Positions 3,025 to 47,449 of a DNA stretch of 64,000 bases are shown piece by piece. The DNA lies in IMG/VR virus record IMGVR_UViG_3300042484_002457, positions 124,001 to 188,000 of that record. One strand, written 5' to 3'. The notes below the pieces were generated by a model, which was not told where the DNA came from, did not search any database, and saw nothing but the letters and a program-made list of their open reading frames with translations. Every line of letters starts with the position of its first letter. Position 1 is the stretch's first letter. A program made the translations under genes and the position numbers.

Positions 3025-3292
3025 TGGCAAAATTGACGAGCAAATGCAACTGGCTCGAAATATCAAACGCAGAGATTTGCAAACAGGCAATGTTATTCTT
3101 GACTTTCGTGAGCTCAAGGTAGTAAAATCTAGCATGAGTGGGCAACAAGTACCAAAAGATTTTGATCGAATTGTTGCTTACTATTATCAACACTATGCCA
3201 ACACAATAGATCGGCTACTGAAAGAAAATGGATACGAAATTGTCAAATCTGAAGAACCCCAAGCACAACCCGCAGAAACTGATCCTAGTTGA
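2987..3292 (+). CDS. hypothetical protein
   Basis: 101-aa ORF overlapping the upstream gene. Confidence 0.65.
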   Translation: MRYLILTYVTRPNGKIDEQMQLARNIKRRDLQTGNVILDFRELKVVKSSMSGQQVPKDFDRIVAYYYQHYANTIDRLLKENGYEIVKSEEPQAQPAETDPS

Positions 3293-4154
3293 TTAGTTTC
3301 CAACCTTTGTAACTTTTATACAGTCCTTTAACTAGTTTGTATGCTTCGGAGCCACTGCTAAAATTATATGCGGTGGCAAGATCTCCAGTTGTTCCGCAAA
3401 ATGTACCGTGGTTAGGATGAACAAAGTTATATTTGATAGCACGACTTTTTGTAGCATGGCTAATTTTCTTTCTTGATTCTGAGGCCCAAGCATGAGTTTT
3501 AAAACTTTCAGGTCTTTCTAATCTCCTTTGTTTTTGAGACTCTGATAATTTTTGTCGCATATCGTCGGTCCATATACGCTTACTATTAGATTCTCTTATT
3601 TTTTGTTTTTGGTAATCTGATATTGGATGAGACACATTTCCTTTAAGTTTTGCAGAAATTTTTTGTCTTGACTCTATAGTATGTGTTTTTCCATACATTG
3701 GATTATTTGTGCCTGAATTTCTATTAGATATATCAGACTTGAATTGTTTGGCTCGTTCGTCTCCAAATAATTCTTCATACGTCTTGTTTTTTCTGTTTTT
3801 GGATAATTGTTCTTTAGTTTCATTAGACAATGTGTGATGTTCTCCCCCTTTGGAGATATTAGTAAGGATACCACCGTCTTTTCTTCTACCGTATAAATCT
3901 ATTAGATGTGTTTCTCGGTCAATTGCTTCTTCTTTAGTTAACGATTCAAATACAACCTTGACTTCGGGAACTAAGTTTGCAGATAAGATGTTGCTAATTT
4001 CGTTAACTTTTTCTAAATTTACTATTTTAGTTCTAGTCTCCCGTATATGTTCTTTATATCGGAGTTCTGCTGTTCTTGATGTAATCCCTACATAAAAAAC
4101 GGTTTGAGTTAGTGGATTCAAAATCTCATAAACATAAAAAATTTTACTTGACAT
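3285..4154 (-). CDS. GIY-YIG family homing endonuclease with NUMOD3-type repeats
   Basis: FYVYEI...FYVGIT...RYKEH, LTNISKGGE, NPMYGKTHTIESRQKIS repeats; AT-rich and antisense to neighbours. Confidence 0.85.
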   Translation of the reverse strand: MSSKIFYVYEILNPLTQTVFYVGITSRTAELRYKEHIRETRTKIVNLEKVNEISNILSANLVPEVKVVFESLTKEEAIDRETHLIDLYGRRKDGGILTNISKGGEHHTLSNETKEQLSKNRKNKTYEELFGDERAKQFKSDISNRNSGTNNPMYGKTHTIESRQKISAKLKGNVSHPISDYQKQKIRESNSKRIWTDDMRQKLSESQKQRRLERPESFKTHAWASESRKKISHATKSRAIKYNFVHPNHGTFCGTTGDLATAYNFSSGSEAYKLVKGLYKSYKGWKLIN

Positions 4155-4176
4155 ATACTATTCTTTCTATTATAAT
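4148..4176 (+). promoter_or_regulatory. sigma70-type early promoter
   Basis: TTGACA (4148-4153), 17 nt spacer, TATAAT (4171-4176); ATG follows at 4183. Confidence 0.8.
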
Positions 4177-4182
4177 CATACT

Positions 4183-4797
4183 ATGACTAAAGATATTTAT
4201 CAAAAACGCATAATTTTAACGGATATCGACGGTGTCGCGCTTGACTGGGAATATGCGTTTGATGTGTATATGCGGCAACACGGTTTCAACAAACAAGAAG
4301 GCGGCCAATTCAAATACAACATTGGCACACGCTACGGAATTGATACAGAACAAGGCAAAAAGCTGATCAAGATTTTTAATGAATCGGCACACATGGGATT
4401 TTTGCCACCCTTGCGTGATTCTATGTATTATATTAAACGTCTGCACGAAGAGCACGGATACGTGTTTCACGCAATTACTTCATTGAGCAAAGACGAAAAC
4501 GCACAAGAACTTCGCCGCATGAATATTAAGAAATTGTTTGGCGAATCAACATTTGAAAAATTTGTGTTTTTGGACACTGGAGCAGACAAAGATGAAGCCC
4601 TGGAGCCATATCGTGACTCAGGGCTATGGTGGATTGAGGACAAAATTGTCAATTGTGAAGTTGGATACAATCTTGGACTCTATCCCTTGTTAATGGAACA
4701 CGGGCACAACCTGGACTACGAAAATCCTGCTATTCCTCGTGTTCGTAATTGGCGTGAAATTTATTCAATAATTGCTCCTAGCGAGAATACAATTTAA
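4183..4797 (+). CDS. HAD-superfamily 5'(3')-deoxyribonucleotidase-like protein
   Basis: ILTDIDGVALDW (DxDG), AITS, WIEDK motifs. Confidence 0.8.
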   Translation: MTKDIYQKRIILTDIDGVALDWEYAFDVYMRQHGFNKQEGGQFKYNIGTRYGIDTEQGKKLIKIFNESAHMGFLPPLRDSMYYIKRLHEEHGYVFHAITSLSKDENAQELRRMNIKKLFGESTFEKFVFLDTGADKDEALEPYRDSGLWWIEDKIVNCEVGYNLGLYPLLMEHGHNLDYENPAIPRVRNWREIYSIIAPSENTI

Positions 4798-17943: not shown

Positions 17944-19118
17944 AATTCAAAGACTTTCGAACAGAAGAAAAAGTACGCTTGGATCCCAAGTGTTGGACAG
18001 GTAAAAAAATTGGCAACCCCAAGACCAAGGTCAAGGGTGGAGTTAGAGTCAACAACTGTGTGCCCGCTGAATCTGTTGAAGAGGCTGTAAATCCTGCACA
18101 ACAGGCTGCTATTGCTATTGCTAAAAAGAAAAAGAAACAAGGTCTGAAGGAAGGTACAGACAATCCCTACGGATATCGCAAAGGGCAAACTGTAAAACTT
18201 GGCAATGGTCAACAAGGTCGTGTCATTGATATTTTTGATGACAGCATTGAAGTTTTACTAGTTGGCGGCCGAACAGTCACAGTAGACTTCCGTGATGCAC
18301 GGGTAATCGACGAGCAAGGTGTGGCGGAAGATGCTGTGGCAGATTTCTTGGCTCGTGGTGGAGAAATACAAAAAGGCAAGCTACACAAACCACGCAAGGG
18401 TGAAACTTGGCAAGGATCATCACACATTGGTGCAGCAGGCGGAAAAGGTACCAAAGGCACAGTGTCGGGTCGAGCTGCTAACACCAATCCCAAAGGTGGC
18501 AAGCCAGTGGTCAGTGCTGAAGGTTTCAACCCTGAATACAACGACGAAGCAGGCATGGCCGACAACAATCTTGAAACCTTGGAACGTGCTGTGGCAGGTA
18601 TTGACGACCTAATTCAAACCGGTGATAACTTGCCAGAGTGGTGTCAAGAAAAGATCGCAGTGGCCAAGTCAATGTTGGTGGCTGTATGGGACTACATGGA
18701 AAGTGAAGAAGACTCTGAGGAAGTAGATCCTGAAGTGGACGAAATGTTTGAAGCCATGCAAGACCTGGTGTCAGAAATGGCCCAGAAAAATCGTGTGAGT
18801 GAAGATCTAGTGTGGGAACAGTTTGAAGCCATGCCGGATAACGTACTGTACGAAACAGCAGCTTGGCGTCGCAAAGAAGGCAAAAGCGCCAAAGGTGGAC
18901 TCAACGCCAAGGGTGTGGCCAGCTATCGCAGAGAGAATCCTGGTTCAAAACTACAAACAGCAGTCACAACCAAGCCCAGCAAACTCAAGCCAGGATCCAA
19001 AGCAGCCAAGCGCCGTAAATCATTCTGTGCAAGAATGGGCGGAGTCAAAGGACCAATGAAAAAGCCCAATGGCAAGCCCACACGCAAAGCTCTAGCCCTA
19101 CGTAAATGGAACTGCTAA
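17940..19118 (+). CDS. modular polyprotein, putative internal head protein
   Basis: MKFKDFRTE start; short modules bounded by x-x-E sites; QGVAED linker at 18315; basic C-terminal module ...RRKSFCARM...RKWNC. Confidence 0.75.
   Translation: MKFKDFRTEEKVRLDPKCWTGKKIGNPKTKVKGGVRVNNCVPAESVEEAVNPAQQAAIAIAKKKKKQGLKEGTDNPYGYRKGQTVKLGNGQQGRVIDIFDDSIEVLLVGGRTVTVDFRDARVIDEQGVAEDAVADFLARGGEIQKGKLHKPRKGETWQGSSHIGAAGGKGTKGTVSGRAANTNPKGGKPVVSAEGFNPEYNDEAGMADNNLETLERAVAGIDDLIQTGDNLPEWCQEKIAVAKSMLVAVWDYMESEEDSEEVDPEVDEMFEAMQDLVSEMAQKNRVSEDLVWEQFEAMPDNVLYETAAWRRKEGKSAKGGLNAKGVASYRRENPGSKLQTAVTTKPSKLKPGSKAAKRRKSFCARMGGVKGPMKKPNGKPTRKALALRKWNC
18315..18331 (+). repeat. ninth copy of the QGVAE linker repeat
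   Basis: CAAGGTGTGGCGGAAGA, in frame (QGVAED). Confidence 0.9.
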
Positions 19119-19119
19119 A

Positions 19120-19389
19120 ATGAAATATTGGGCTATTGCAATATTGTTGTGCCTGTCAGGATGTAGTACTGTGGTGCCTGTGGTTGCTAAGTTTCCCGAA
19201 GCACCGGGCCAACTGGTAAGTGAGCCTTGTCCCAATCTTAAAAAATTAAATGATGATGCGGCCTTGAGCAACATTGCACGTACCATTACTGAAAATTACA
19301 CCGCGTACTACGAATGCGCAGTCAAACTAGACGCATGGATTGAGTGGCACGCAAAACAAAAAATAATATTTGAAGGAGCCAACAAATGA
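19120..19389 (+). CDS. lipoprotein, putative outer-membrane spanin (Rz1-like)
   Basis: Lipobox LSGC after a hydrophobic signal; Pro-rich; two further Cys. Confidence 0.7.
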   Translation: MKYWAIAILLCLSGCSTVVPVVAKFPEAPGQLVSEPCPNLKKLNDDAALSNIARTITENYTAYYECAVKLDAWIEWHAKQKIIFEGANK

Positions 19390-20006
19390 GCATATTAACA
19401 CTGGAACAACTAAAACAACTGGTACCGGGAAACCCGTATATAGAAGACTGGCACGAGGCCCTGGACCAGTTGCTGGATGACTACGGTATCAACACACCAC
19501 AACGGGTGGCACACTTTGTTGCACAATGCGCCCACGAATCAGGTGGGTTCAAGTTCATCAAAGAAAACTTGAACTACAGTGCAGCCGGCCTCAACACCAC
19601 GTTCCGTAAGTATTTCCCCACACTGGAATCAGCTCGTTCCTATGAGCGCAAGCCAGAAAAGATTGCCAACCGGGTGTATGCCAACAGAATGGGCAACGGC
19701 GACGAAGCATCAGGTGATGGCTGGCGCTACTGCGGACGTGGGCTGATTCAGCTCACAGGCAAAGACAACTACACATTCTTTGCGGGCAGCCTAGGCATTC
19801 CCGTGGAAGAAGCTGCTGAATACTTGGCCACATTTGAAGGCGCAGCACAGTCAGCCTGTTTCTTCTGGGAACAAAACAACTTGAATCGCTTTGCTGACGT
19901 CAATGATGTGCGGGGACTAACTCGTGCCATCAATGGCGGCGCAATTGGCCTAGAAGACAGACAAAAACACACCGAACATGCACTACATGTGCTGACCGGA
20001 CACTAA
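19386..20006 (+). CDS. glycoside hydrolase family 19 endolysin
   Basis: FVAQCAHESGGF, ENLNYS, YCGRGLIQLTGKDNY, INGG. Confidence 0.93.
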   Translation: MSILTLEQLKQLVPGNPYIEDWHEALDQLLDDYGINTPQRVAHFVAQCAHESGGFKFIKENLNYSAAGLNTTFRKYFPTLESARSYERKPEKIANRVYANRMGNGDEASGDGWRYCGRGLIQLTGKDNYTFFAGSLGIPVEEAAEYLATFEGAAQSACFFWEQNNLNRFADVNDVRGLTRAINGGAIGLEDRQKHTEHALHVLTGH

Positions 20007-20023
20007 AATAACAGGAGCCAACC

Positions 20024-20530
20024 ATGAGCAAAAAACAATTACCTCCCGGCAAAATTACCAAATCAGAAGAAGACTGGATGACCAAGAAATGGCGTCCCAT
20101 GATGGCCATTATGTACATGACCGCATGTTTGTTTGACTTTGTGTTCTTCCCTATTATGTTTACTGCGGTACAGTTCTGGGAAGTCAGTGCAGCCAACGAT
20201 GCCTTCCGTCAGTGGGCACCAATAACACTGCAAGGCGGCGGCTTGTTCCACGTGGCCATGGGTGCTGTACTGGGCGTTAGTGCATGGAGTCGTGGACAAG
20301 AGAAAATGGCTGGTGTGACTGGTGGCTCAGCGCCAGCACCTGGCTGGGGGTCAATGCCTGTAGCCAACAACAGCTGGGGCAGCGCACCTGGTGCACAAAC
20401 TGCTGCATACACTCCAGCACCCAGCTGGGGATCAACACCTGTGGCCAGCAACAGCTGGGGCAGCGCACCTGTACAAACAGGTTGGGGAGGCAAAAAGGCT
20501 CCGCCTGAAGCCGAATTCCCTGTATTATAA
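20024..20530 (+). CDS. putative holin with low-complexity WG-repeat tail
   Basis: KWRPMMA followed by TM helices, LFHVAMGAVLGV...RGQEK; directly after the endolysin. Confidence 0.65.
   Translation: MSKKQLPPGKITKSEEDWMTKKWRPMMAIMYMTACLFDFVFFPIMFTAVQFWEVSAANDAFRQWAPITLQGGGLFHVAMGAVLGVSAWSRGQEKMAGVTGGSAPAPGWGSMPVANNSWGSAPGAQTAAYTPAPSWGSTPVASNSWGSAPVQTGWGGKKAPPEAEFPVL
20333..20471 (+). repeat. imperfect ~58-nt direct repeat, period 81 nt, in the holin tail
   Basis: PAPGWGSMPVANNSWGSAP / PAPSWGSTPVASNSWGSAP. Confidence 0.85.
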
Positions 20531-20539
20531 GGAAACATT

Positions 20540-20761
20540 ATGAAATCCATAATCTTAGCAATCACCCTGGCTCTAGGTACTTCGCTGGTGTTGGCCGAAG
20601 GGCCCCGAGAAACTGTCAAGGTCTGCGTTGACGTAAAAGACAAAGCAGGCCAAACAGTCATTGACCCCAAGACCAAGCAGCCCAAACAAAACTGCAAAGA
20701 AGTCAAAAAGCACAAGAAACTAGAAGGCGCTGAAAAAGTACCCGACGGCAAGAAGAAGTAA
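20540..20761 (+). CDS. small secreted protein
   Basis: Signal peptide, two Cys, Lys-rich. Confidence 0.65.
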   Translation: MKSIILAITLALGTSLVLAEGPRETVKVCVDVKDKAGQTVIDPKTKQPKQNCKEVKKHKKLEGAEKVPDGKKK

Positions 20762-20815
20762 CATTTGACCTTGTGCCCCTGGGTCCTGTATAATTAAATG
20801 TACAGGACCTTTTTC

Positions 20816-21577
20816 ATGACTGACTACTACGCCACCCTGGGTGTTGCAAAAACTGCCACTGCCGAGGAAATCAAACGAGCCTATCGTCGACTGGCTTCGC
20901 AACACCATCCTGATCGGGGTGGCAACACTGCCCAATTTCAACAGATTCAAGCGGCCTATGACACACTAGGCGATGCTGCCAAACGTGCCGCTTACGACAA
21001 CCCACAGCCGCAATTTGGTGGATTTGGTTTTCAACAAGGCCAAAACATCCATGACATTTTCAGTCAGATGTTTGGGCAACAACCACGTCGTGGCCACATA
21101 CGCATGACCATTGGAGTTGACTTAGTGGATGTGATCAATGGCAGCACAAGAACTGTGCAACTGGGCACAACACAGGGCTCCAACACAGTGGAAATTGCTA
21201 TACCCCGGGGTATTGACAACGGAGACACAGTGCAGTATGGCGGAATTGGTCCCGGGGGTTCAGACCTCATGGTACAGTTTAGAGTCAACCCCATGCCCAA
21301 TTGGCGCAGAGAAGGTATAAATCTGCACACCGAAGTTCAAGTGTCAATTTGGCAACTGATCCTGGGCAGTGAAATCACCATGACTGCACTCACAGGCAAT
21401 GAGCTTACTATTACAGTGCCCCCAATGACTCAACCCAATACTGTGATGCGCCTACGAGCACATGGAGTACATCATAGGTCTGGACAGCAGGGCGACATCA
21501 TGGTAAGAATTGTGGCCCAAATTCCCCAGAACATTCCCGCCGAAGTCATGGCAGCAATACAGCAACACTGCCCGTAA
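20816..21577 (+). CDS. dnaJ: DnaJ/CbpA-like co-chaperone
   Basis: DYYATLGV, HHPDRGG J-domain, G/F region and C-terminal domain; no zinc finger. Confidence 0.92.
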   Translation: MTDYYATLGVAKTATAEEIKRAYRRLASQHHPDRGGNTAQFQQIQAAYDTLGDAAKRAAYDNPQPQFGGFGFQQGQNIHDIFSQMFGQQPRRGHIRMTIGVDLVDVINGSTRTVQLGTTQGSNTVEIAIPRGIDNGDTVQYGGIGPGGSDLMVQFRVNPMPNWRREGINLHTEVQVSIWQLILGSEITMTALTGNELTITVPPMTQPNTVMRLRAHGVHHRSGQQGDIMVRIVAQIPQNIPAEVMAAIQQHCP

Positions 21578-25524: not shown

Positions 25525-26193
25525 TTATCTCGACTTGCAATGGTCCCCGTGCCATCTACCAAAGTGTCCGGGAGCAAATGATTTTTGGCAGTATACACAT
25601 GAGATTCGTTCAGAGTGAGCAAATGCGTATTTTTCTTTTTGCTCTGTGGTTCTATTCAACTGCTGCTGCCTGATTATTTCTCTACGTTCAGGAGTCATTT
25701 GATCAATAGTTTTTTGTCTCAGTATTTGTTTCAGCTCGTTACTAATTGGGCCACGCTTGTGTCCAGTATTGCCAGATGTTTTACCTCGGCGAGCAATAGC
25801 TGCTTGATGGTTTTTTCTAACCTCAGGATCGTGCATTGGGTTGTTTGTTTTTGTGTGTATTGATTTAATTCTACTATATTGCTGCCTTAATAACTCGTAT
25901 GTTCTTCCAGTTATTTTGTGTCGTTGTTGATTCTGGTTTTCTAAATTCGCCATAGTCCAGGCAGCATAGATCATCTTTTCTTTGTGAGGGCTAACAACCA
26001 TTTTAGTCAGTAACCAATGACAAACAAAGTGTTCTCGTGCAGTTAAATCCACCAAATTTTCTTTGAGATTTGACCCATCTAAACTTCGTGGTATAATATG
26101 ATGTCGTTCTTTGTATTCTGTTAGAGATCTTGTTTTTGCTCGTTGAACAATGTTGTTATACCATGTGGTATATTTGTTGTCAATAAATATCAT
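25525..26193 (-). CDS. HNH homing endonuclease
   Basis: ERHHIIPRSLDGSNLKENLVDLTAREHFVCHWLL; C-terminal CVYC...RWHGDHC; ATG 26193 behind AAGGAG. Confidence 0.88.
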   Translation of the reverse strand: MIFIDNKYTTWYNNIVQRAKTRSLTEYKERHHIIPRSLDGSNLKENLVDLTAREHFVCHWLLTKMVVSPHKEKMIYAAWTMANLENQNQQRHKITGRTYELLRQQYSRIKSIHTKTNNPMHDPEVRKNHQAAIARRGKTSGNTGHKRGPISNELKQILRQKTIDQMTPERREIIRQQQLNRTTEQKEKYAFAHSERISCVYCQKSFAPGHFGRWHGDHCKSR

Positions 26194-26262
26194 TGCTGGT
26201 GCTCCTTTCAAGCATTAGAGTAGTTGGATATGTCCAGTATCGCGAACTACACCTTTATTTAT
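26191..26262 (-). promoter_or_regulatory. conserved structured leader upstream of the HNH gene (copy A)
   Basis: Closely similar to 44653-44723 with compensatory stem changes. Confidence 0.75.
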
Positions 26263-26269
26263 AAATAAA
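26254..26269. promoter_or_regulatory. palindromic divergent T4-type late promoters
   Basis: TTTATTTATAAATAAA is a perfect palindrome carrying TATAAATA on both strands, between divergent genes. Confidence 0.7.
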
Positions 26270-26288
26270 CGAACAAAGATTTAACTAA

Positions 26289-37347: not shown

Positions 37348-38209
37348 GACATTTCTCTTTTACTTTGGCAAGGTGCCGATTAAAGTTGGCTATGGTCAAG
37401 GTGTCCCAATCCATTTGCATACTGAGACTGAGATCAGGTATGGCATCGCATATGGAATTGTGCGCGGAACCAAATCCAGCAATGTTGCTCAAGGTATTGT
37501 ATTCGTAACGATGTTGTGCTTGGTATGTTACACTGCCCTGGGACACTGCCCAGTTACCCAGTAGCTCGTATTCACTGAACCATTTGATAATGTTGCCTGT
37601 ACCCCAAGGCGGAACTGTGGGCATCCCTGGTACCGCATCAATAATTGCATCCAACCAGTGCTTGTTGGGCCAACGCTGTTGCAGATGTTCACGAAGTTTT
37701 ACAAAATCTTTTTTTCTAACTGCACATAATTCAGTAACAAAGCAATGTGGTGATTGATGGCGCAACCCTGTGATGGCTTCAAACACCCCATTGTAACTGC
37801 CTTGGGTGGTGTTCATTAGTGACAACAAATTTAACTGATTGTTGGGATAGGGATTGTATGGCTCAAGCATAAATGTATCAGCATCGTGCATGAGAAAAAC
37901 ATCATGCTCCAATATGTCAAGATATGCTAACTTGATAGCTTGCTGGCGCAACCACCAGCCACGGTAGTCATCTGGAAACACCCAGTTGTTGACTTCAGGG
38001 TATTGTTTATATATTATGCTATCGTTAATGTATTCAAAGCGACTGCTGTCAATATTGTATTTGTGCCAGACTGGCTCAAGTTCGTCCCGTGTCATTGGAC
38101 TAGCAATCACTGTGGTATCAATACCTTTAAGGTTGTGATCCCACTGCATAGCAAATGCTGCATGAGGCACACGATACTTGGCCAAAAACAAAACTCTTGC
38201 AACTGTCAT
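37328..38209 (-). CDS. glycosyltransferase-like (DUF6492-type) protein
   Basis: GWWLRQQAIKL, MHDADTF, FSEYELLG; shares motifs with 34145-34984. Confidence 0.55.
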   Translation of the reverse strand: MTVARVLFLAKYRVPHAAFAMQWDHNLKGIDTTVIASPMTRDELEPVWHKYNIDSSRFEYINDSIIYKQYPEVNNWVFPDDYRGWWLRQQAIKLAYLDILEHDVFLMHDADTFMLEPYNPYPNNQLNLLSLMNTTQGSYNGVFEAITGLRHQSPHCFVTELCAVRKKDFVKLREHLQQRWPNKHWLDAIIDAVPGMPTVPPWGTGNIIKWFSEYELLGNWAVSQGSVTYQAQHRYEYNTLSNIAGFGSAHNSICDAIPDLSLSMQMDWDTLTIANFNRHLAKVKEKCHAIQSL

Positions 38210-39204
38210 GTTTGATTACAACTGTTGACACAGGCATATAACCTGCCTGTGGAAATACTAGTGTTTTGCCAAGATGCTTCCACCTGATCAAACCACTCCA
38301 TACAATGCTCTAGACTATGCTCAAGAGCATTGTTTTCACGAACCATGTCAGTTAATTGGCTGTTTCCTGGATGTGTCATTTGTCCAGGATAGAATCCCAA
38401 ATAGCAACAGGGATAAACAGATCCATCGGCGGCCAAATATATTTCTCTATTGACTTTGTGTTGACATCTCAAATTCAATTGCTCAGTATCTTTTTGTAGT
38501 TGTATTGTTTTGGCATCAAACCATGTGACATGACTGTGAAGCAAAGCGTCAATAGGTGGCGGTGTTGATGCAGGGCCCAACCAATGCGAAAAGGTGCCAT
38601 CTCGGGCATACACTGGCCCTGCATCGCGGCCATCATAGATGTTTTCAAACCGCGCAAACCCCCACTCCTGGGCCAATCTTTTGCATTCAGCTTCTTGGTG
38701 ACGATTGTGATCAAACGGTACAAATCTCCAAAGTGCTTGCCCCCCAGCATTGATATAGGCACGAGCATTTTCTGTTACTCGATTCCAATCTGTATCTTGA
38801 CGGTACAGTGCGTGGGTGTCAGCAAGGCCGTCCAGAGCAAAGCCTATAGTGACCAAGGGATGGGCCATCTGTGCCCACCAATCAGGGGTTCTTGCTCCCC
38901 CATTGGTGTTGATGTTTACTTGTATGCCCTGACTGCTCAACCACTGCACAATTTCTGCTCCGTCTCGGGCCAGTGCAAAATCTCCAAGATTGCCGTTGAA
39001 ATTTACAGCATAGTTGGAATTGAGTTTTAGTTGGGGTATCAAGGGCTCAATAATATGTTTAAACTCAGGTAGCCTAAGCTCGCATGTGGGATATCCTGAG
39101 TTGTAATCTACCCCGCGGTAGTTTCTTGGGCACATTGGACACCTGGCATTACACCGTGTTGTGAGTTCAACATGAACACGACGTATATCGCTAACTTTCA
39201 GCAT
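38206..39204 (-). CDS. radical SAM protein with SPASM/twitch-like domain
   Basis: CNARCPMC, NTNGG, ADGSVYPCCY; start reassigned to ATG 39204 just after minus-strand TATAAATA. Confidence 0.85.
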   Translation of the reverse strand: MLKVSDIRRVHVELTTRCNARCPMCPRNYRGVDYNSGYPTCELRLPEFKHIIEPLIPQLKLNSNYAVNFNGNLGDFALARDGAEIVQWLSSQGIQVNINTNGGARTPDWWAQMAHPLVTIGFALDGLADTHALYRQDTDWNRVTENARAYINAGGQALWRFVPFDHNRHQEAECKRLAQEWGFARFENIYDGRDAGPVYARDGTFSHWLGPASTPPPIDALLHSHVTWFDAKTIQLQKDTEQLNLRCQHKVNREIYLAADGSVYPCCYLGFYPGQMTHPGNSQLTDMVRENNALEHSLEHCMEWFDQVEASWQNTSISTGRLYACVNSCNQT

Positions 39205-39241
39205 TGGATATTTATAGGCATACATTTTGCTAAATATTATT

Positions 39242-44019: not shown

Positions 44020-44655
44020 TTAATTTTTAGAAGCAGCTCTTCTCTGGTGTGCTAGTCTCATACGTTCTTTGGTCTCCGCAGAATGCGTTTTTCCTAGCAT
44101 GCCCGACACTTTAGGTTTTTTACTGTATGTCTCTCTAAGAGACTCTTTAATTTTCTTTTTTGTTTCTTCCGATCGCATCGATTTGCTACGCGAATTTCCA
44201 ATTAGTGATTTACTAATTTTTTCCTTAGTTTCATCACTGGTTATTTGCAAGGCTCGTTTATTGCGAATTTTTTGTTTGATTTTCTCAGATAGCATTTTGC
44301 CTGTTTGAGCAAGACGAATACTATTCTTGTGTTCTTCACTAAGTGATTCGCACTTGAATCGATTTTTTCCGTGAAAACAAGATCGATTCAATAGTAAATT
44401 GCTACCCCAGTTTTCAAATATCAATTGCTGTTCAAAATCGTATGCATCATTGCCAGTATAAAACTCTGCAATAATATACCATACATAATCATCAAAGTTG
44501 TTAGAAACAATAAGGGATGATGTTTTATAATACATAAAATCTACATTAGATGGTAATGTGTTGGCTTCTCTGTAGCCGATATAAAATTCTTTTGATTCTT
44601 TATGAATGCACATATAAACATACGGCATTGCCTTCGTTGATGGATAAGTATTCAT
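44020..44655 (-). CDS. GIY-YIG-like homing endonuclease with NUMOD3 repeats
   Basis: PYVYMC...FYIGYR, repeated SEETKKKI / GKTHSAETKERM; ATG 44655 behind AAGGAG. Confidence 0.8.
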   Translation of the reverse strand: MNTYPSTKAMPYVYMCIHKESKEFYIGYREANTLPSNVDFMYYKTSSLIVSNNFDDYVWYIIAEFYTGNDAYDFEQQLIFENWGSNLLLNRSCFHGKNRFKCESLSEEHKNSIRLAQTGKMLSEKIKQKIRNKRALQITSDETKEKISKSLIGNSRSKSMRSEETKKKIKESLRETYSKKPKVSGMLGKTHSAETKERMRLAHQRRAASKN

Positions 44656-44723
44656 GCTGATTGCTCCTTTTAGCATTAGAGCCGGTGGATGCGTCCAACA
44701 TCGCGACTGGCAACTTTATTTAT
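44653..44723 (-). promoter_or_regulatory. conserved structured leader upstream of the endonuclease gene (copy B)
   Basis: Closely similar to 26191-26262. Confidence 0.75.
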
Positions 44724-44785
44724 CTTTTAAATTGTATTTAGACTGCGTTTAGTTTATACTCTTAACTTAATATTGGAGAATTATC

Positions 44786-47449
44786 ATTAGCTACGTAGAC
44801 AGTTTATTTGATCGTGAGCACGATCGCATTCATGTTGTTGAGCGCCGTGATGGTGTTCGCAAATATCAAGAATACCCGGCCAATTATGTTTTTTATTACG
44901 ACGACCCACGTGGCAAGTTCAAAAGCATTTATAGTACGCCAGTATCAAGATTCAGCACACGCAACAACAAAGAGTTTCGCAAAGAAGTTCGCATGCATTC
45001 CGGCAAGCAACTTTACGAAAGCGACATCAACCCTATCTTTAGGTGCTTGGAAGAAAACTACAAAGATGTCGATGCTCCAGAACTGCACACAGCATTTTTC
45101 GACATTGAAGTAGATTTTGATAAAGTTCGGGGTTTTAGTCCTGTTGAAGATCCATTCAATCCTATCACTGCAATTTCTGTTTATCTAGATTGGTTGGATC
45201 AGTTAATAACCTTGGCGGTGCCGCCCAAGGGCCTGAGTTGGGAAACTGCGCAAGATTTGGTCAAAGAATTTGATAATACTATTCTGTTTGATAACGAAGC
45301 AGACATGATCAAAACTTTTCTTGATCTCATTGACGATGCAGACGTACTGTCAGGTTGGAACTCGGAAGGTTATGACATTCCGTACACTGTAAACAGAACC
45401 ATACGTATTCTCAGCAAAGACGATACTCGTAAGTTTTGTTTATGGGGGCAGTTGCCCAAGAAGCGCATGTTCGAACGCTTTGGTGCTGAACAAGAAACTT
45501 ATGACTTGGTGGGCCGTGTTCACATGGACTATATGCAGTTGTACCGCAAGTACACTTATGAAGAACGGCACAGCTACAGCTTGGACGCCATTGCTGAATA
45601 CGAGCTAGGTGAACGCAAAACACAGTTTGAAGGTACACTGGATTCCTTGTATAATCAACACTTCAAGACATTTATTGAATACAACCGTCAAGATACCTTG
45701 TTGTTAAACAAGCTGGACAAGAAATTGCGATTCCTGGAACTGGCCAGCGAACTGGCACATGCCAACACTGTGCTACTACAGACCACCATGGGCGCTGTGG
45801 CAGTTACCGAACAGGCCATTATCAACGAAGCACACGAACGTGGCATGGTTGTGCCCAATCGCAAACAGCGACTGGACAGTGAAGACACACAAGCAGCTGG
45901 AGCATATGTTGCATATCCCAAAAAAGGCATGCACGAGTGGGTGGGATCAGTAGACATTAACTCACTGTATCCGTCGGCCATTCGAGCCATGAACATGGGC
46001 CCCGAGACTGTGATTGGACAGTTGCGACCCATCATGACTGACAGGTATATTGCAGACAAAATGGCCAAGAACCGTGGCAACTTTGCTGACGCCTGGGAAG
46101 GCTTGTTTGGATCGCTTGAATACACTGCTGTGATGGAACAGAATCGTGGCACTGAAATCATCATCGACTGGGAGTCAGGCCAAGAAACCAAGCACAGTGC
46201 CGCTGAAGTTTGGAACTTGATGTTTGACAGTAACCAGCCTTGGATTTTGACTGCAAACGGTACTATTCTAAGTTTTGAGAAACGAGGTATCATTCCTGGT
46301 TTGCTGGAGCGTTGGTATAGTGAACGTAAAGAAATGCAGGCCAAGAAAAAAGATGCCACTGATCCCAAAGAGATTGCGTTCTGGGACAAGCGACAACTGG
46401 TCAAAAAGATTAACTTGAACAGCTTGTATGGTGCTATTTTGAATCCAGGTTGCAGATTCTTTGACAAACGCATTGGACAGTCAACCACACTCACTGGTCG
46501 AGCAATTGCTAGACACATGGATGCTTACATCAATGAATGTGTAACTGGCAAGTACGACCACCTGGGCGAAGCAGTGATTTATGGTGACACAGACTCATGC
46601 TATTTCTCAGCCTGGCCGGTGCTACAGAAGGAAGTTGAACAAGGACGTATGGAGTGGAGCAAGGAAACTTGTATTGCACTGTATGATTCAATTGCAGACC
46701 AAGTCAACGAAAGCTTTCCTACATTCATGGAACAGGCATTTCATTGTCCCAGAGACATGGGCTCATTGATCAAGTGTGGTCGAGAAATGGTTGCAGATCG
46801 CAGTTTGTTTATCACAAAGAAACGCTATGCCGTAAACATCATTGATCTAGAAGGCAAACGACTAGATGTCAATGGCAAGATTGGCAAGACCAAGGCCACT
46901 GGCTTGGACTTGAAACGTAGTGATACACCCAAAGTTATTCAAGACTTCTTGTTGGAAATTCTAAATAGTCTGTTGGCAGGCGCTGACAAAGATACTATTG
47001 TAGAAAAAATTCGTGAGTTCAAATACAAGTTTATGGAACGCCCGGGTTGGGAAAAAGGCTCACCCAAGCGTGTGAACAACTTGACCAAGTACGCTGCTGA
47101 CGAAGCACGTGAAGGCAAAGCAAACATGCCTGGTCATGTGCGAGCAGCACTGAACTGGAACAACCTGCGTAGAATGAACTCGGACAACTACAGTATGCAG
47201 ATTGTGGATGGTATGAAAACCATTGTGTGCAAGCTCAAGAGCAATGCACTGGGCTGGACGTCAATTGGTTATCCCACAGATGAACAACGTTTGCCTGCTT
47301 GGTTTACAGAATTGCCGTTTGATAACGACCTCATGGAAGCCACTGTTGTGGACAAAAAAGTTGACAACTTGTTGGGTGTACTAGAATGGGATCTAGCCTC
47401 AGCAACCAATACTGAAAATACATTTACATCATTGTTTAGCTTTGAATGA
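44786..47449 (+). CDS. family B DNA polymerase (T4 gp43-like), probable ATT start
   Basis: Exonuclease motifs FDIEVD, GWNSEGYDIPY, YNRQD; polymerase motifs DINSLYPS, KINLNSLYG, YGDTDS; frame open 69 codons upstream of ATG 44993 to an ATT 7 nt after GGAG. Confidence 0.93.
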   Translation: MSYVDSLFDREHDRIHVVERRDGVRKYQEYPANYVFYYDDPRGKFKSIYSTPVSRFSTRNNKEFRKEVRMHSGKQLYESDINPIFRCLEENYKDVDAPELHTAFFDIEVDFDKVRGFSPVEDPFNPITAISVYLDWLDQLITLAVPPKGLSWETAQDLVKEFDNTILFDNEADMIKTFLDLIDDADVLSGWNSEGYDIPYTVNRTIRILSKDDTRKFCLWGQLPKKRMFERFGAEQETYDLVGRVHMDYMQLYRKYTYEERHSYSLDAIAEYELGERKTQFEGTLDSLYNQHFKTFIEYNRQDTLLLNKLDKKLRFLELASELAHANTVLLQTTMGAVAVTEQAIINEAHERGMVVPNRKQRLDSEDTQAAGAYVAYPKKGMHEWVGSVDINSLYPSAIRAMNMGPETVIGQLRPIMTDRYIADKMAKNRGNFADAWEGLFGSLEYTAVMEQNRGTEIIIDWESGQETKHSAAEVWNLMFDSNQPWILTANGTILSFEKRGIIPGLLERWYSERKEMQAKKKDATDPKEIAFWDKRQLVKKINLNSLYGAILNPGCRFFDKRIGQSTTLTGRAIARHMDAYINECVTGKYDHLGEAVIYGDTDSCYFSAWPVLQKEVEQGRMEWSKETCIALYDSIADQVNESFPTFMEQAFHCPRDMGSLIKCGREMVADRSLFITKKRYAVNIIDLEGKRLDVNGKIGKTKATGLDLKRSDTPKVIQDFLLEILNSLLAGADKDTIVEKIREFKYKFMERPGWEKGSPKRVNNLTKYAADEAREGKANMPGHVRAALNWNNLRRMNSDNYSMQIVDGMKTIVCKLKSNALGWTSIGYPTDEQRLPAWFTELPFDNDLMEATVVDKKVDNLLGVLEWDLASATNTENTFTSLFSFE

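Follow-up and report, generated by a model that had tools for sequence, protein, structure and literature searches.

How free-standing homing endonuclease genes keep their nucleases in check is known only for a handful of T-even cases, each with its own hairpin. In the genes for I-TevI, I-TevII, I-TevIII, segB and Aeh1 mobE, a late promoter lies close to a hairpin that sequesters the ribosome binding site; the hairpin includes sequence upstream of the late start, so that it forms on early or middle read-through transcripts but is cut off in late ones, and the genes sit inside co-oriented early or middle units (PMC2988022). The gp55-dependent late promoters of T4/KVP40 and of cyanomyoviruses are TATAAATA and NATAAATA, respectively (PMC2984593). 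Other selfish nucleases and toxins are controlled by cis-antisense RNAs, as in IS10 RNA-OUT/RNA-IN, hok/Sok and CopA/CopT, where a short (about 70 nt), highly structured RNA is made from a promoter inside the 5' end of the target gene, is complementary to its 5' UTR and ribosome binding site, and ends in a hairpin plus U-run. Bulged stems are reported to be typical of antisense RNAs (Hjalt and Wagner 1995). In the T4-like cyanophage S-PM2, the antisense RNA CfrI, of about 225 nt, spans a homing endonuclease gene and psbA (Millard et al. 2010, cited in PMC2984593). Finally, the PeSL cassettes of T4-type phages are short repeated units of promoter plus stem-loop scattered through the genome (PMC2839356, PMC4122927).

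We examined a 64-kb stretch (64,000 nt, hereafter the window) of a 209,543-bp IMG/VR virus record from lake water, estimated to be 58% complete, for which a covarying RNA leader had been proposed in front of two unrelated homing endonuclease genes. The observation is confirmed, and the element is far more widespread than the two copies first seen. Copy A (26191-26262, minus strand) and copy B (44653-44723, minus strand) read exactly as originally transcribed, each ending at the ATG of an ORF. The core TCGCGATNNTGGACNNATCCA occurs twice in the window against 0.10 expected, and ATAAATAAAG twice against 0.16 expected; the conserved cores occur only at these two places in the window, against 0.1-0.3 expected. 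A covariance model finds exactly five copies in the record, the three others lying outside the window at genome positions of about 21261, 46757 and 53104, all on the minus strand and all just upstream of an ATG. These five copies already show compensating changes in all stems. The features of copies A and B are listed in the table.

Features of copies A and B, with positions and strands given for the window
Position	Strand	Feature	Supporting observation
26256..26262	-	Copy A: ATAAATA box, predicted late promoter of endonuclease gene A; predicted mRNA start at the invariant G at 26250	In the genome, 25 of 29 ATAAATA sites have a same-strand ORF start within 120 nt; TAAATA-to-G spacing 5 nt in 90 of 105 copies
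26220..26250	+	Copy A: main hairpin (P1/P2 of the original prediction); on the + strand, 11 pairs with two bulged G flanking a paired C (GCG); would be the 3' hairpin of the predicted antisense RNA	Nine of its 11 pairs show changes on both sides
26196..26218	+	Copy A: 5' hairpin of the predicted antisense RNA; CUGG-UGCU pairs with AGCA-UUAG, including G.U pairs; loop CCUUUCA carries the complement of the Shine-Dalgarno; on the mRNA strand this stretch is TCTAA, the small TGCT/AGCA hairpin and CCAGC	G.U at the third pair invariant in 103 of 103 sequences
26183..26189	+	Copy A: ATAAATA box inside codons 2-4 of endonuclease gene A; predicted promoter of the antisense RNA, predicted start at G 26195	Box kept in all three reading frames; spacing from CAGC 5 nt in 77 of 110 copies
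26251..26262	+	Copy A: U-rich tract ACCUUUAUUUAU directly after the 3' hairpin; reverse complement of the mRNA-side promoter	Mean 6.9 U in 12 nt over 118 copies
25525..26193	-	Endonuclease gene A: HNH with NUMOD3-type repeats, 222 aa counted from the ATG at 26193	Pfam HNH, E 6.7e-4; phrog_655 homing endonuclease, E 1.8e-40
44717..44723	-	Copy B: ATAAATA box; predicted mRNA start at G 44711	
44681..44711	+	Copy B: main hairpin	The one mismatch originally noted (A.C on the mRNA strand) is a G.U pair on the + strand
44657..44679	+	Copy B: 5' hairpin of the predicted antisense RNA, loop CCUUUU	
44644..44650	+	Copy B: variant box ATAAGTA in codons 2-4 of endonuclease gene B; predicted antisense start at G 44656	TACTTAT variant in 13 of 110 copies
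44712..44723	+	Copy B: U-rich tract AACUUUAUUUAU after the 3' hairpin	
44020..44655	-	Endonuclease gene B: 211 aa with NUMOD3, phrog_314	GIY-YIG assignment rests on motif reading only
44020..44790	.	Approximate extent of the inserted cassette at copy B: endonuclease gene, 68-nt module and about 60 nt beyond it, between an 86-aa gene and the DNA polymerase gene	In the complete relative G003 the same two genes overlap as TAATG with nothing between them

Two pattern scans of IMG/VR, one without the ATAAATA part, each returned at least 120 loci. Of 187 unique pattern matches, 148 had an outer stem with at least 5 of 6 pairs, and 42 different arm combinations of the outer stem were found, the same number being counted among 119 unique copies. 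A model built from 60 diverse copies found 114 copies in 100 loci that had not been used to build it. Complete relatives of 360 kb (with terminal repeats) and 333 kb carry 13 copies each, and a 524-kb record carries two; the DNA polymerases of these relatives are 62-72% identical to that of the window. The nearest cultured phages, Sinorhizobium phage Phosso and Agrobacterium phage Atu_ph07, are at 52% and 47%, and the model found no copy in them, nor in Vibrio phage 2.275.O or T4. A blastn search of 50,697 phage records with two copies found nothing credible. A pattern scan of prokaryote genomes returned at least 120 loci, of which the 80 examined were all chance matches without a model hit. 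A match to a described RNA family would have removed the novelty, but Rfam 15 gave no hit in the window at gathering thresholds and only two chance-level hits around copy A at E up to 10; no tRNA or tmRNA was found either. The text of a 2023 catalogue of more than 10,000 candidate structured RNAs from IMG/VR (PMC10690425) does not mention endonuclease-associated motifs, although the catalogue may include this motif.

At least 120 IMG/VR contigs carry the motif, which lies nearly always in front of HNH, GIY-YIG or NUMOD3 homing endonuclease genes. Of 100 complete downstream ORFs, 45 carry NUMOD3, while HNH, HNH_3 and HNH_5 match 14, 12 and 10 ORFs, and GIY-YIG and SegE_GIY-YIG match 4 each. In this genome (genes lettered as their copies), A and D fall in phrog_655 (HNH), B and F in phrog_314 'homing endonuclease', and C matches only PHROGs of unknown function. 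A and B resemble each other only in their C-terminal NUMOD3-type repeats. The link to endonuclease genes with unrelated catalytic domains therefore holds, but the GIY-YIG label originally given to gene B is not confirmed: Pfam and PDB sequence searches gave no hit for it, and it rests only on the YVY...YIGY reading and the PHROG hit. At least nine copies with short ORFs are frameshifted endonuclease genes with an intact module, which could be recent decay or assembly errors.

Covariation is strong. On non-seed sequences, 98.4% of the cells of the whole structure are paired and 13 of 17 pairs show changes on both sides; none of 500 shuffles reached any of the five measures, and slid controls fell to 31-52% paired. 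As related sequences are not independent, the shuffle counts overstate significance. A mutual-information scan of 103 sequences gave no pseudoknot signal, only the nested pairs and one further inner pair of the 5' hairpin.

The main result concerns the strand on which the fold is found. In the outer stem of 119 unique copies there are 677 Watson-Crick cells, 34 A.C or C.A cells and no G.U cell on the mRNA strand; on the opposite strand all of these 34 are G.U. They occur in more than a dozen different stem variants and at four positions, so they are not one inherited event. On 103 distinct non-seed sequences, the main hairpin read on the opposite strand is 98.7% paired, with about 26 G.U cells that are unpaired on the mRNA strand. 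RNAalifold on the same 60 sequences gave -17.15 kcal/mol with 17 pairs for the antisense strand, against -13.24 kcal/mol with 11 pairs for the sense strand. The extra pairs form a second hairpin, in which CUGA(U) pairs with (R)UUAG through an invariant G.U and whose inner pairs covary. This accounts for the TCTAA and ATCAGC that had been described as conserved but unpaired, as they pair with each other only on the opposite strand. The shared 56-nt stretch folds at a mean of -16.9 kcal/mol on the opposite strand against -11.8 kcal/mol on the mRNA strand, and is better in 111 of 118 copies. Covariance-model scores are nearly equal between strands for consensus copies, and up to about 14 bits higher for the antisense model on some diverged copies, which is suggestive only. 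More generally, this is a clear case where strand assignment by counts of G.U against A.C reverses a plausible reading.

The interpretation first offered, a regulatory leader of the endonuclease mRNA, is thus only partly supported: the element is real, portable, endonuclease-linked and part of an inserted cassette, but the original prediction is probably wrong about the strand and the mechanism. It remains possible, though we consider it unlikely, that the functional RNA is the mRNA leader, whose 5'-terminal stem-loop would start at +1 and stabilise the late mRNA or bind a protein, the small hairpin partly masking the Shine-Dalgarno. In the main hairpin 96.7% of cells pair on the mRNA strand as well, so the leader folds too and could carry a function of its own, and the predicted +1 is exactly the first base of the stem, which is the layout of 5' hairpins that protect against RNase E. 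Hairpin control of the ribosome binding site is moreover the established scheme for T4 I-TevI, segB and Aeh1 mobE (PMC2988022). However, all 34 non-Watson-Crick cells of the outer stem are A.C and none is G.U, the conservation of TCTAA and ATCAGC and a TATTTA box that is independent of reading frame (see below) remain unexplained on this strand, and single-sequence folds of the mRNA strand are no better than shuffles (z-scores of -0.1 to -0.8). The small TGCT/AGCA hairpin has only 3-5 pairs and lies wholly downstream of the predicted start, so late transcripts would keep it, unlike in the T4 scheme. The only helix that could span the promoter pairs ATAAATA with TATTTAT, closing a three-way junction in some single folds; it shows no covariation, and its partners fail to co-vary in the CTAAATA and GTCAAC variants, so we did not adopt it. 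Nothing points to the ligand sensing that had also been suggested.

We read ATAAATA as a putative T4-type late-promoter box, and ATAAATAAAG is most likely such a box rather than transcribed leader; on the opposite strand it forms the U-tract. The ORFs that follow ATAAATA sites in this genome include virion structural proteins (phrog_13484, phrog_11591) and five further NUMOD3 endonuclease genes that lack the hairpins. The two complete relatives encode a T4 gp55-like ORF (E 1.5e-6 and 2e-5), although none was found in the window's own incomplete record. With T4 geometry, the start falls on the invariant G that opens the main stem. Directly after the ATG lies TAYTTA(T), the same box on the other strand, present in 110 of 119 copies and in all three reading frames (79, 18 and 11 copies; for example MTIY, MYL, MIFI). 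When it directly follows the ATG, one or two extra bases appear before the ATG, so that its distance from CAGC is mostly that given in the table, with a range of 3-6 nt. It is often not the full consensus, the variants GTAAATA, ATAAGTA and CTAAATA occurring in about 40% of copies, but it is kept whether the neighbouring genes are opposite (44 of 50) or co-oriented (19 of 21). A constraint that ignores the reading frame and mirrors the spacing of the forward box is most simply a second promoter pointing backwards, as inferred from sequence alone.

The features of the opposite strand downstream of the main hairpin are those of a possible terminator. The hairpin is followed by ACUUUUAUUUAU, and a strong terminator-like site elsewhere in the window has the similar tail TTTCATTTAT. 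Copies that lack the mRNA-side ATAAATA (at three loci, L142, L145 and L156) still keep a U-run there. On the other hand, the hairpin is separated from the U-run by AC and is only moderately stable, and a simple terminator scan did not flag it. The predicted 68-nt RNAs of copies A and B fold as two clean hairpins, at -17.5 and -18.2 kcal/mol with z-scores of -2.05 and -1.6, whereas the corresponding 5' UTRs give -11.0 and -12.9 kcal/mol with z-scores of -0.8 and -0.2.

Our best explanation, which we hold with about even confidence, is a regulatory cassette of roughly 90 bases carried at the 5' end of free-standing homing endonuclease genes in one clade of freshwater jumbo phages. It would hold two promoters, TAAATA boxes of the T4 gp55 late type, that face each other, each box 5 nt from a G, with the two predicted starts about 60 nt apart. 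The outer box would drive the endonuclease mRNA, with a 5' UTR of about 57 nt beginning at the first base of the main hairpin. The inner box would drive a structured cis-antisense RNA of about 65-70 nt, starting at the G of GCUGAU and covering the whole 5' UTR from +1 to within 0-2 nt of the AUG. It would form a 5' hairpin of about 8 pairs with CCUU or CUCC, the complement of the Shine-Dalgarno, in its loop, then the 3' hairpin of 11 pairs with two bulged G, and end in the U-rich tail, so that it looks like a self-contained small RNA gene with an intrinsic terminator. Pairing of the two RNAs, and possibly collision of the two polymerases, would hold endonuclease translation down. The motif, its spread, its association with endonuclease genes, the covariation, the strand asymmetry of the fold and the two equally spaced boxes are shown by our data; that the boxes are promoters, that the antisense RNA is made and ends at the U-tract, and that it represses, are inferences made without transcript evidence, as the only runs labelled RNA, from wastewater, are probably DNA and hold only a relative's copy of the module. 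Two late promoters firing at the same time give no obvious temporal logic, and the invariant GCG bulge and CCA are not explained by an antisense mechanism alone, suggesting a partner that reads them.

A second, unlikely alternative is that the fold acts on the opposite strand but within longer transcripts, as a terminator, attenuator, processing site or 5' leader, either of host-gene transcripts reading antisense through the endonuclease gene or of outward late transcripts from the inner box into the neighbouring host gene. The endonuclease gene lies opposite to both neighbours in 49 of 92 loci, and in all five copies of this genome, and the start of the divergent neighbour is typically 12-70 nt beyond the module. 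T4 endonuclease genes carry embedded promoters for downstream host genes (PMC2988022), and at copy A a TATAAATA on the + strand overlaps the U-tract and precedes the next gene. However, in 21 of 92 loci both neighbours are co-oriented with the endonuclease gene, and the box and fold are kept equally well there. When the upstream gene is co-oriented, its stop codon usually lies within ATAAATA (24 of 37 loci have gaps of -8 to +9 nt), so outward transcripts would run antisense into that gene. A plain terminator or promoter does not need an invariant bulge and two covarying hairpins, and a terminator at the far end of the gene does not shield it from antisense read-through.

The module is part of a mobile insertion at an endonuclease hot spot. 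At copy B the window has about 770 bp inserted exactly at the junction that is empty in G003, and another relative, G002, has a different, co-oriented HNH-type ORF without the module at the same junction. This brings in a third reading, close to the mobility-associated end that had been proposed as an alternative, in which conservation is mainly at the DNA level, the module being a repeated recombination or mobility end of the cassettes, like the PeSLs, or a single-stranded DNA hairpin, and the fold being incidental. The number of copies per genome, up to 13, and the occurrence of the same leader subtype in front of different endonuclease families, which implies shuffling at the boundary, would fit. 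We consider it very unlikely, as duplex DNA has no reason to keep pairing through double changes or to tolerate G.T on one strand only, and as conservation stops abruptly outside the two boxes while the cassette at copy B extends further.

One might speculate, at somewhat less than even probability, that this is a previously undescribed, widespread family of structured cis-antisense small RNAs, each made from a gp55-type promoter facing the endonuclease promoter, which would set a threshold on homing endonuclease expression. Because the single-stranded parts are shared between copies while the stems differ, the RNAs may also act in trans, on other copies in the same genome or on the endonuclease genes of a co-infecting relative, giving a form of copy-number control or immunity for selfish nuclease genes. 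A dedicated protein partner may recognise the invariant GCG bulge. If the antisense reading is right, one conserved, portable control module would travel with hundreds of endonuclease genes from at least two nuclease superfamilies, using the antisense logic of transposons and toxin-antitoxin loci rather than that of T4. The motif also gives a testable RNA family for Rfam, a probable late-promoter consensus for an uncultured clade of freshwater jumbo phages, and a marker for finding endonuclease cassettes and their insertion sites in metagenomes.

Compared with the T-even endonuclease genes, the module shares a T4-type late-promoter box, here predicted, directly upstream of the gene, a hairpin that touches the Shine-Dalgarno, and the inferred purpose of tightly limiting nuclease translation. 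It differs in that all supported helices lie downstream of the predicted start, about half of the genes lie antisense to their neighbours, the selected fold is on the opposite strand, and one conserved module, without sequence similarity to the T-even cases, is shared by hundreds of genes. PeSLs likewise flank variable genes and plausibly promote modular shuffling, but they carry sigma-70-type early (or Mot middle) promoters with a simple stem-loop placed before the promoter, whereas no sigma-70-like hexamer pair lies in the module, which has late-type boxes on both strands, two covarying hairpins and a strict link to endonuclease genes. CfrI is also an antisense RNA opposite a homing endonuclease gene in a T4-like phage, but it is longer, is a single locus of unknown function, and no conserved two-hairpin module is described for it. 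The predicted layout resembles IS10 RNA-OUT acting on the transposase mRNA, and the other cis-antisense systems, in the size and structure of the predicted RNA, its bulged stems, its complementarity to the 5' UTR and ribosome binding site, its terminator-like end and the position of its putative promoter; it differs from them in being unrelated in sequence, in sitting on phage homing endonuclease genes with predicted phage late-type promoters on both sides, in its invariant GCG bulge, and in being so far a prediction from sequence.

In relative G002, a complete relative of this phage, the junction that holds copy B of the two-hairpin module in the window is occupied by a different, co-oriented HNH-type ORF without the module, whereas in G003, a second complete relative, the junction is empty. 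This makes it a hot spot for endonuclease gene insertion next to the DNA polymerase gene. In the window, the polymerase keeps about 70 conserved N-terminal residues upstream of its first ATG, but there is no ATG, GTG or TTG in frame after the preceding TAA. The candidates are an AUU or AUC start after GGAGA, or an N-truncated polymerase, and the original TAATG start seems to have been displaced by the cassette insertion. In G001 (the 524,565-bp record behind locus L057), the polymerase gene is present twice, on opposite strands near the two ends, and two motif copies have identical scores, which may reflect an inverted duplication or an assembly artefact.

Coordinates of the features (window positions unless another record is named)
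Feature	Position	Strand
ATAAATA box close to an ATG, in-window case	39204-39215	minus
Radical SAM/SPASM gene following it	38209-39204	
Other ATAAATA boxes close to an ATG	genome 968, 37697, 54864, 68585, 108963	+
Other ATAAATA boxes close to an ATG	genome 25476, 67233	minus
DNA polymerase 5' region	44771-44995	+
TAA preceding the conserved residues	44771-44773	
AUU or AUC start after GGAGA (candidate)	44775-44788	
First ATG of the polymerase	44993	
NUMOD3 endonuclease gene without the module	3288-4200	minus
NUMOD3 endonuclease genes without the module	genome 37697, 68585, 191919	+
NUMOD3 endonuclease gene without the module, apparent deletion of the main hairpin	genome 193526	minus
Palindrome at copy A	26253-26268	
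Gene beyond copy A	26289	+
Region of copy A compared with wastewater runs X23-X25	26102-26271	
HNH-type ORF at the G002 junction	2164-2793 of locus L342 (G002:C1:317300-320500, reverse complement)	
DNA polymerase gene in G001, first	18929-21430	+
DNA polymerase gene in G001, second	508482-510983	minus

At copy A, the sequence TTTATTTATAAATAAA is palindromic and gives TATAAATA on both strands, one copy for endonuclease gene A and one 21 nt before the gene on the + strand. Wastewater runs labelled RNA-Seq, which are probably DNA, hold a relative's copy of module A joined to a homologue of this same + strand gene with a shorter spacer; relatives of this phage are therefore not confined to lakes.

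At least nine copies of the module (loci L050, L080, L092, L111, L169 and others) precede frameshifted endonuclease ORFs while the module itself is intact, as a result of either recent decay of the gene or assembly errors. Five further NUMOD3 endonuclease genes are preceded by ATAAATA but lack the two-hairpin module. One of them (genome -193526) keeps the box, a short SD-bearing stretch and ATG-TATTTA, and looks like a natural deletion of the main hairpin.

At least eight ATAAATA boxes lie only 4-7 nt before an ATG, with no Shine-Dalgarno between. These may be leaderless late mRNAs, as with T4-type geometry the late transcript would start at or next to the AUG.
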